A DNA stretch of 64,000 bases, from the sequence record KJ019142.1; one strand, 5' to 3'. The notes under the pieces are model-generated. The model searched no databases, was not told the origin of the DNA, and saw only the letters and a program-made list of their open reading frames with translations. The position numbers and the translations under genes are program-made. Below, one piece after another: positions 9,220 to 59,968 of this stretch. Within the stretch, counting starts at the first letter, position 1; every line of letters starts with the position of its first letter.

Positions 9220-9249
9220 AGATATGTAAAGTTCTTATTACAACACTTC

Positions 9250-9364
9250 CATCTAACCGAGACCTACGGGGAAGTAAAATACGTCTCTAATACCTACACC
9301 GGAGGGTGGTGTAGGAATAATACTATCGTCAGCTCCCCCTGGCACTACTTACCCTTTTTACACA
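9250..9364 (+). ncRNA. PhotoRC-II-like structured psbA leader RNA
   Basis: Stem GAGAC/GTCTC (9259-9287); hairpin CCTACACC/GGTGTAGG (9293-9315) whose loop AGGGT complements ACCCT at 9351-9355; lies directly upstream of psbA. Confidence 0.6.
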
Positions 9365-58935: not shown

Positions 58936-58958
58936 ACTATTACTTTTTGGAAAACATT

Positions 58959-59564
58959 ATGACAGAAGCGACAGAAACCAAGAAACCGCGTAGCGCACGA
59001 AAGGCACGCAAACCAGCGGCACCCAAAGTCCCTACCTCCCTACCAAACAATCCTTTGATGTTTGAGATTCTTGACATGGCATCCCGTACTAGGGGTACTG
59101 AAAAGAAGGTAGATGTTCTCAAGAGATACGGGTGTGGTGCTCTAAAGGCACTATTCATCTGGAACTTTGATGAAACTGTAGAGTCTGCTCTACCACCAGG
59201 TGAGGTTCCCTACTCTGGATATGAAGAACAGCATGTATACAGTGGAACACTAACTGATAAGATTGAAGAGTCTTCACGTCAGATGTATGAGAATGGAAGT
59301 TTCTCATTGGGTTCTACTGATGCCAACGCTAAGACTACACTAAGGGCACAATGGAAGAACCTCTATCACTTTGTTGAGGGTGGTAATGGTGGTCTATCTA
59401 AAACACGTCGTGAGATGATGTTTATCAACCTCCTAGAATCTGTTCATCCCCTGGAAGCAGAGATCCTCATCCTAGTCAAGGATAAGGAACTTGACACCAA
59501 GTATAAGGTTCCCTTTGAGGTTGTAGAAGAAGCATTCCCCGAGATCCAATGGGGAGGACGTTGA
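58959..59564 (+). CDS. conserved cyanomyovirus-type hypothetical protein
   Basis: LFIWNFDE...LPPGEVPY, RREMMFINLLE..HP.EAEIL. Confidence 0.75.
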   Translation: MTEATETKKPRSARKARKPAAPKVPTSLPNNPLMFEILDMASRTRGTEKKVDVLKRYGCGALKALFIWNFDETVESALPPGEVPYSGYEEQHVYSGTLTDKIEESSRQMYENGSFSLGSTDANAKTTLRAQWKNLYHFVEGGNGGLSKTRREMMFINLLESVHPLEAEILILVKDKELDTKYKVPFEVVEEAFPEIQWGGR

Positions 59565-59590
59565 CATAAATACAAAGGATATGTTATAAT
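59561..59590 (+). promoter_or_regulatory. consensus sigma70 promoter with embedded late promoter
   Basis: TTGACA-N18-TATAAT; CATAAATA at 59565-59572. Confidence 0.85.
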
Positions 59591-59597
59591 ATCCACA

Positions 59598-59684
59598 CGT
59601 TCAACCCACTTCGGTGGGTCGCAAGTAAGTCGCGGAACGGATTCGTTCATCCAGGAAACTGGACGCAAACGACTGAAGGAACGG
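59598..59684 (+). ncRNA. tandem glutamine riboswitch-like element (glnA / Downstream-peptide class)
   Basis: Two CGTTCA-hairpin-CGCAA...GAACG units; E-loop-like AAGTAA/TGAAG; lies upstream of a YRG peptide. Confidence 0.75.
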
Positions 59685-59717
59685 GTTTTAACTAACCTCA
59701 ACTTCAGGAGTACTACT

Positions 59718-59885
59718 ATGAACACTCTCGCACTCATCAAAAAGCAGATCAACAAAGCTGCCGCACTTCACAACGCTCAGATTTCTCACACCGCCTATCG
59801 TGGTGTTGAGTATGATGTTAGTTGTGATCAGTCTTCCGAGACACATGGCACTTTCTGCTACCGCGGACGCACTTATAACAAGTGA
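59718..59885 (+). CDS. DUF4278-like small protein (55 aa)
   Basis: Manually read MNTLALIKKQINKAAALHNAQISHTAYRGVEY...CYRGRTYNK; AGGAG RBS. Confidence 0.8.
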   Translation: MNTLALIKKQINKAAALHNAQISHTAYRGVEYDVSCDQSSETHGTFCYRGRTYNK

Positions 59886-59904
59886 GTCCTAACTGAATAG
59901 TGTA

Positions 59905-59937
59905 GGAAAGGGAAGGACTTGTTTCTTCCCTTTTTTT
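59905..59937 (+). terminator. rho-independent terminator overlapping the next promoter
   Basis: AAAGGGAAG...CTTCCCTTT plus T run, then GTGCTATAAT. Confidence 0.7.
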
Positions 59938-59968
59938 GTGCTATAATATAAACAAGTATTCTATCATC

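Follow-up and report, generated by a model that had tools for sequence, protein, structure and literature searches.

To our knowledge, very few classes of riboswitch have been found in phages, and glutamine riboswitches are one of these. That cyanophages have glnA RNAs, and have them in tandem, is already in print (PMC2864571, PMC5066625, PMC9481103), and the tandem form, with two aptamer-like units a few nucleotides (nt) apart, is common in marine metagenomes. The glnA alignment of Weinberg 2010 holds the junction strings that concern us here 53 times, each unit aligned as a separate match; the summary in Ruff 2016 describes tandem aptamers a few nt apart, with no cooperativity in vitro and no known platform or benefit (PMC5066625); and a 2022 review of tandem riboswitches lists 157 doublets as pseudo-cooperative (PMC9481103). 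The form has stood since 2010-2011 with neither a known benefit nor an identified expression platform (PMC5066625). How are two such units put together, and what could the pair be doing? We address these questions for one element of this kind, at positions 59598-59683 of a 64,000-nt stretch of record KJ019142.1 (the whole stretch is called the window below; features lie on its plus strand unless said otherwise). We consider it probable that the element is a glutamine-responsive translational ON switch for a YRG peptide, and that its sensor is one nested, strand-swapped double aptamer, not two independent ones.

What we call the outer fold of the element has every part of the Glutamine-I aptamer (glnA RNA, RF01739; Weinberg 2010, Ames and Breaker 2011, Klahn 2018), and it shares with that class a position in the 5' leader of a DUF4278-type gene. 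It departs from Glutamine-I in that P2, which ends there in a loop of about 4 nt, would here be closed by a permuted second aptamer, and in the state of the linchpin, a one-base-pair pseudoknot with covariation and crystal support in Glutamine-I (PMC12510878), which is C-G in the window, as in Glutamine-II, whereas it is G-C in 29 of 29 cellular examples; also unlike those cellular examples, the window element sits in a phage genome. Glutamine-II (the Downstream-peptide motif, RF01704) has in common with it the CGUUCA-hairpin-CGCA core, YRG peptides downstream and a C:G linchpin, the counterpart there being C19:G41 (PMC6698751), but the hairpin that encloses GGAACG in Glutamine-II is absent from the window element. 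In the Glutamine-II crystal a domain-swapped dimer is seen (PDB 6QN3), the 5' strand of one molecule pairing with the 3' strand of the other; that swap is regarded as non-physiological (PMC6698751), and it is the very swap that we propose here within a single molecule. The tandem glycine riboswitch also sets two like aptamers, with contacts between them, on one expression platform, but its aptamers are complete and dock through tertiary contacts, whereas the units of the window element would share helices by strand exchange, one of them being circularly permuted. As for the tandem glutamine riboswitches of the literature, they are the same object as ours; where they have been described as adjacent aptamers with no platform or benefit, we favour a nested strand swap with a shared helix and a candidate anti-Shine-Dalgarno platform. 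We found no description of a nested or permuted glutamine aptamer fold in the literature searched, in which Ames and Breaker 2011 was represented by way of PMC5066625, and the nested, strand-swapped architecture, which we hold to be the most likely one, would be new if not already published.

Unit 1 (59598-59639) reads CGUUC-A, a hairpin at 59604-59619, CGC-AAGUA, AGUCG-CG and GAACG; unit 2 (59644-59683) reads CGUUC-A, a hairpin at 59650-59663, CGC-AAA, CGACU, GAAG and GAACG. An earlier note on this DNA had listed these two units, a promoter before them, a complementarity between them and a peptide after them, and had taken the whole for a glnA-type glutamine riboswitch in a phage. Each of these features is in place, and the identification holds: the Rfam model RF01739 (Glutamine) matches 59596-59687 over its full length (model positions 1-53) with 41.1 bits against a gathering score of 35 (E = 1.6e-5 over the 64-kb window), its 5' half falling on unit 1 and its 3' half on unit 2, with a 41-nt insert in the P2 loop. 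The P1 helix CGUUC/GAACG (59598-59602/59679-59683) encloses a three-way junction with the P1a hairpin (59604-59619), the E-loop strands AAGUA (59623-59627) and GAAG (59675-59678) flank the P2 helix, and the linchpin C59622-G59684 is present. Neither unit is complete by itself, AAGUA occurring in unit 1 only, GAAG in unit 2 only and an own P2 hairpin in neither. The other covariance model that the note had named, RF01704, stays below its threshold: membership in Glutamine-II was rejected, as unit 2 alone reaches 32.1 bits against a gathering score of 33, with non-canonical P2 columns and a hairpin that is not formed. Judged by its sequence, then, the window element is a genuine, intact glutamine riboswitch of the Glutamine-I class in its known tandem form.

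In the architecture that we propose, the carrier would be an autonomous, early-type cassette of a T4-like cyanophage, and the two units would exchange their P1 strands. CGUUC of unit 1 (59598-59602) would pair with GAACG of unit 2 (59679-59683), as it does in the Rfam alignment, in the minimum free energy (MFE) structure from RNAfold and in the RNAalifold prediction, and the result would be a canonical Glutamine-I fold. This outer aptamer would be made up of hairpin 1 as its P1a (ACCCAC-UUCG-GUGGGU, 59604-59619); the CGC triplex or linker strand, with the linchpin base C59622, followed by AAGUA as the 5' half of the AAGUA/GAAG E-loop (together 59620-59627); the C59622-G59684 linchpin; and a P2 formed between the units by AGUCG (59628-59632) and CGACU (59670-59674). 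The latter strand opens the 3' side of the fold (59670-59684), in which it is followed by the E-loop half GAAG (59675-59678), the P1 strand GAACG (59679-59683) and G59684. Instead of a loop, the outer P2 would carry a circularly permuted second aptamer as its cap. There, GAACG of unit 1 (59635-59639) would pair with CGUUC of unit 2 (59644-59648) across the 4-nt loop GAUU, an inner P1 hairpin that occupies 59634-59648 (G-GAACG 59634-59639, GAUU 59640-59643), and the other ligand bases of the inner site would come from hairpin 2, which serves as the inner P1a (UCCAG-GAAA-CUGGA, 59650-59663), from CGC 59664-59666 within the CGC-AAA stretch (59664-59669), and from G59640 in the GAUU loop, the inner linchpin base, whose proposed partner is C59666. 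Followed from CGUUC at 59644, the inner order is hairpin 2, CGC, AAA and the shared-helix strand, and the opposite strand runs into C-G-GAACG-G. In other words, the inner module would be an aptamer in permuted order, with its P1 closed by a loop, its P2 open and no E-loop.

Such nesting would account structurally for a linker fixed at a few nt, would explain why neither unit is complete alone, and would both supply a candidate anti-Shine-Dalgarno platform and name the bases to mutate. It would also offer a natural circularly permuted aptamer and a strand swap otherwise seen only as an artefact of the Glutamine-II crystal. Biologically, many T4-like cyanophages may be reading host glutamine, and with it nitrogen status, early in infection and adjusting the dose of a small YRG peptide accordingly.

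The evidence comes largely from relatives. Related loci were collected from IMG/VR, 80 of them through the neighbouring DUF6433 protein (a route blind to the RNA) and 118 through a junction pattern; 107 viral loci were parsed as the two-unit element, with 52 distinct combinations of the two cross-unit strands among them. The 26 distinct versions with short hairpins were aligned (alignment A1, to which counts out of 26 refer), and pairs were counted for the nested and the side-by-side structures. In the window AGUCG is the exact complement of CGACU, a clean 5 base pairs, and among the relatives all 8 alignment positions of the cross-unit helix vary on both sides, which bears out the proposal that these strands couple the units. 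Hairpin 1 covaries in 4 of its 4 basal pairs and hairpin 2 in 3 of 4. Overall, the nested structure is 95.2% paired and has a covariation score of 0.305. Column shuffles score 0.095, none of 500 reaching the observed value, and sliding the partners by 1-3 columns gives no more than 0.081. The nested fold is also the MFE structure of the aptamer (-30.5 kcal/mol, RNAfold), and RNAalifold arrives on its own at both the outer P1 and the inner hairpin GAACG-loop-CGUUC. The outer P1 strands are invariant in 26 of 26 sequences and show no covariation; the inner P1 hairpin sequence and both E-loop strands, AAGUA and GAAG, are invariant as well, and a relaxed search for P1 variants within tandem elements gave no usable ones. 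The covariation supports the nested single glnA-type fold as, most likely, the conserved arrangement. The earlier note had offered this fold as an alternative state; by the covariation it is the favoured one.

Is the inner module a second sensor, or a cap? Each base with a glutamine contact or a part in the triplex of Glutamine-II (C1, G2, G18, C19, C39, G40, G41; PMC6698751) has an invariant counterpart in the inner unit (26 unique sequences, 107 loci): its CGUUCA, CGC and GGAACGG are unchanged in all sequences, and the ordinary helices beside them vary freely. Because the ligand-site bases hold still while the adjoining helices drift, we read the module as a second glutamine-binding site, not a spacer, and the two sites might then be coupled. 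The equivalent of the inner linchpin G59640/C59666 is G-C in 26 of 26 sequences, which is consistent with the nested model, though a pair that never varies cannot covary. One could suppose instead that the outer Glutamine-I aptamer alone binds, and that P2 is simply capped by a structured inner module, such as the remnant of a duplication, with no ligand site of its own. The Rfam model does need the outer fold only, the inner unit is without an E-loop and its linchpin without covariation, singlet aptamers sit at the same locus in some phages (L052), and, in the account given in PMC5066625, no cooperativity was reported in vitro. Nothing would keep a purely structural cap from covarying, however, and what we see is the invariance of every Glutamine-II contact and triplex base amid freely drifting helices, so we think a single working sensor unlikely.

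Which P1 strands pair with which? All four are invariant and therefore cannot decide the arrangement, and the linchpin becomes the deciding feature. The third base of the CGN that follows hairpin 1 and the base that follows GAACG of unit 2 are C-G at 72 loci and G-C at 35, with no exception among the 107; in the RNA-blind subset (50 loci found via the neighbouring gene) the two states number 28 and 22. A tree of the neighbouring protein calls for 8 changes of linchpin state, and well-supported branches force no fewer than 4 of these. In unit 1, GAACG is without exception followed by G, and unit 2 never has any CGN but CGC. It follows that a side-by-side fold would set G.G and C.C at the linchpins of every CGG-type locus, that is, in 35 of the 107 relatives, and among the unique sequences it leaves 7 of 26 unpaired at each linchpin. 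This tells against a simple tandem, in which two side-by-side aptamers would each close their own P1 (59598-59602/59635-59639 and 59644-59648/59679-59683), with AGUCG/CGACU a kissing contact or not formed at all. Such a tandem is what Weinberg 2010 implied in aligning the two units as separate glnA matches, and later reviews count doublets (PMC9481103; PMC5066625); unit 2 alone does score 32.1 bits on Glutamine-II, and both linchpins would still pair in the window. That Glutamine-II match is below the cut-off, however, with P2 unformed; neither unit has a P2 hairpin of its own, the E-loop halves are split between the two, and in fold evaluation the side-by-side structure (-21.7 kcal/mol) is 8.5 kcal/mol less stable than the nested one (-30.2 kcal/mol), before any pseudoknot term. 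We hold the simple tandem to be quite improbable.

How would a nested double aptamer act on the gene behind it? The leader is probably a translational ON switch. A candidate expression platform lies at 59694-59710, where AACCU (59694-59698) can pair with GGGUU (59683-59687) and CUUCAG (59702-59707) with CUGAAG (59673-59678), the second pairing overlapping the Shine-Dalgarno sequence AGGAG (59706-59710). The MFE structure of the whole leader (-45.2 kcal/mol, z -3.9) differs from the aptamer fold: it keeps both hairpins and the inner hairpin, replaces the outer aptamer by the two platform pairings just named, and has GUUCA (59599-59603) paired with UGAAC (59719-59723) at the start codon. The complementarity is conserved. 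Across 83 unique leaders, the pairing of the aptamer 3' half with the 24 nt before the start codon averages -10.5 kcal/mol; measured against shuffles its mean z is -1.8, and z falls below -1.64 in 64% of the leaders. The anti-Shine-Dalgarno partner changes along with the aptamer: that of ACUGAAG is CUUCAGG or CUUUAGG, that of CCCGAAG is CUUUGG, and in CGG-type loci the C-UCUUU directly after P1 matches AAGGAG. The switching that these comparisons support is between aptamer and anti-Shine-Dalgarno pairing. In the absence of glutamine, the 3' half of the outer aptamer (59673-59687) would pair with the leader around the Shine-Dalgarno sequence, and in this phage the start codon may be taken up as well, by the aptamer 5' strand; once bound, glutamine would lock the aptamer and free the ribosome site. 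The ON direction is suggested by likeness to tested glutamine riboswitches (PMC6212724), and the platform fits the ON mechanism proposed for gifB (PMC6212724). That the RNA instead toggles between side-by-side and nested P1 arrangements during signalling, the two-state interlocked architecture of the earlier note, strikes us as very improbable: although the four P1 strands are identical in sequence, so that either arrangement is possible in this phage, and unit 1, being transcribed first, might briefly close on itself, nothing speaks for such a toggle and comparison gives no signal for the side-by-side state, which the linchpin contradicts in about one third of relatives, and the aptamer 3' half has its conserved alternative partner in the Shine-Dalgarno region and not in the other unit.

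Several points weigh against a nested double aptamer that switches translation on. The choice of P1 partners leans on one covarying pair together with topology and thermodynamics, since the P1 strands never vary; the inner linchpin, being invariant, lies outside the reach of covariation; and both linchpins are C-G in the window, so that the window sequence by itself is compatible with the side-by-side fold. Positions 3 and 6 of the cross-unit helix are repeatedly mismatched, A.C or C.A, in many relatives. Tandem glutamine aptamers were not cooperative in vitro, as PMC5066625 relates of Ames and Breaker 2011. Finally, the predicted OFF state lies 9.4 kcal/mol below the ON state in a nearest-neighbour model, which leaves tertiary contacts and co-transcriptional folding outside its scope, and a gap of 9.4 kcal/mol is large for a millimolar ligand.

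The open reading frame (ORF) under this control (59718-59885) encodes a DUF4278-like YRG peptide of 55 amino acids (aa) that belongs to phrog_545 (E = 1.4e-35); it follows the glutamine aptamer directly, the arrangement that characterizes the Downstream-peptide motif. The YRG motif was described in the supplement of Weinberg 2010, and the window peptide has it at residues 27-29 and 48-50, just as the earlier note had said; the note's DUF4278 likeness falls somewhat short in this peptide, which scores 21.7 bits (E = 2.7e-4) on the Pfam family PF14105 against a gathering threshold of 25.3. Among the peptides at the equivalent position in relatives, 31 of 33 match DUF4278 at E <=0.01, the best at 1.2e-7, and in the alignment of these peptides (n = 33) Y27, R28, G29 and R49 never vary, and Y48 and G50 hardly ever do. 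Marine data hold at least 451 homologous clusters, and none of the best 120 clusters listed carries a functional name. The window peptide aligns with shorter downstream peptides of other phages through its two YRG motifs. In the downstream peptides of four loci (L042, L288, L302 and L318) a helix segment (LIKEQIEKE..AAQ) comes after the first YRG and the second YRG is lacking; in the window peptide, unlike these, a helix segment precedes the first YRG. The modules of this small YRG-peptide family appear to have been shuffled.

What might such a peptide do? IF17 (gifB), an inactivating factor of glutamine synthetase (GS), resembles it in having a DUF4278-type N-terminal region with YRG and in being controlled by a glutamine riboswitch, but the phage peptide has just 55 aa, and by Pfam it consists of the DUF4278-like stretch alone, with no IF7-like C-terminal part, a result obtained with no IF17 or IF7 reference sequence in the comparison. 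The picocyanobacterial DUF4278 peptides likewise have no IF7-like C-terminal region, the one with the arginines that GS inactivation requires (PMC6212724). In IF17 the DUF4278 counterpart is the N-terminal part, and GS inactivation reportedly does not depend on it (PMC6316151). Any role for the phage peptide in the control of GS, such as the earlier note had allowed for, is therefore a guess, and the claim that it is a GS inactivating factor was rejected.

In most relatives the aptamer hairpins are larger than those of the window. They are replaced by inserts of 140-320 nt, each with a small ORF of 50-68 aa and two conserved Cys; examples, all outside the window, are L024:2494-2924, L042:2496-2714 and L060:2540-2965. 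Hairpin 2 carries an insert at 59 of the 107 loci and hairpin 1 at 44, and both hairpins are short, as in the window, at only 27. The AUG of a hairpin ORF lies 3-5 nt into the hairpin stem; the ORFs of hairpin 2 run through the conserved CGCAAA and the cross-helix strand, end in ...DAKAD or ...WDAND, and take their stop from the UGA of the E-loop. These ORFs belong to phrog_504, phrog_6471 and phrog_13397 and have no Pfam match, and compared with the window by tblastn they gave no significant match. Translation of the hairpin ORFs and folding of the aptamer must work against one another. We entertain, at somewhat less than an even chance, a wider picture: a pseudo-symmetric single RNA with two glutamine sites made by P1 strand exchange around one shared helix, the inner site being a natural circular permutation, in which, for most relatives, small protein genes in the hairpins, with start codons in the stems and the stop of the hairpin 2 gene in the E-loop UGA, would allow one fold to gate three ORFs in opposite directions.

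Between the two units of the parsed loci the linker is 3-6 nt, the size of a hairpin loop, with one exception. There, 580 nt that include a long ORF have been inserted (L009:2235-2814) precisely into the 3-4-nt linker, or loop of the inner P1 hairpin; the tandem element is otherwise intact, and the insert looks like a mobile gene of the homing-endonuclease type. No triplet elements were seen in the related loci examined. The nearest virus record (G001), a fragment that is 86% complete, has no RF01739 match. In cellular genomes, a scan with the junction pattern was swamped by chance matches in GC-rich genomes, and an RF01739 search was used instead; 20 of 151 sampled cyanobacterial genomes have matches above the cut-off, and the 29 cyanobacterial loci that we read are singlets throughout, each having a P2 hairpin of its own and a linchpin of the CGG..C type. 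Singlet Glutamine-I aptamers also stand before the YRG peptide at the same locus in some phages (L052:2495-2543; also L041 and L044), and the P1 of the first of these is CGUUG/CAACG, a compensatory change in a P1 that is otherwise invariant.

The window region 59540-59960 is identical (100%) to Synechococcus phage ACG-2014f (Kyanoviridae), in whose RefSeq record the small ORF is hypothetical gp282 and no RNA element is annotated. The element belongs to a self-contained cassette (59561-59937) that consists of a sigma-70 promoter, an 87-nt structured leader, a Shine-Dalgarno sequence, the 55-aa ORF and a terminator-like hairpin, and is flanked by a DUF6433 gene (58947-59564) on one side and by a 59-aa ORF and then thyX on the other. 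The promoter (59561-59590), which had been called perfect, does match the consensus at 12 of 12 positions, with TTGACA at 59561-59566, an 18-nt spacer containing TG, and TATAAT at 59585-59590; a small correction is that the upstream DUF6433 gene has its stop codon (59562-59564) within the -35 hexamer. Transcription is predicted to start at about 59597, so that the RNA would begin at the aptamer, and a TTGAC..TATAAT promoter-like sequence stands at an equal distance from CGUUCA in most related loci. Around the -10 box lies an inverted repeat, GGATAT/ATATCC (59577-59594, strand unspecified). Of 82 unique upstream regions, 54% have a repeat of this kind, with arms of at least 6 nt around the -10 box, whereas 7% of shuffles do; the arm sequences vary between phages (GGATAT/ATATCC, AGGTCTAT/ATAGACCT, GGAGTAT/ATACTCC). 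The repeat could be a 3'-end hairpin of read-through transcripts from the upstream gene, or a feature at the level of DNA.

Past the peptide gene, the hairpin at 59904-59937 resembles an intrinsic terminator (core GGGAAG 59910-59915/CUUCCC 59925-59930, U run 59931-59937) and folds at -19.8 kcal/mol (z -2.6); a consensus terminator scan missed it, its loop and stem being outside the rules of that scan. Elsewhere in the window, at 9233-9328, lies a PhotoRC-II RNA, a cyanophage motif known to be associated with photosystems; it scores 69.4 bits on RF01717, whose cut-off is 39.

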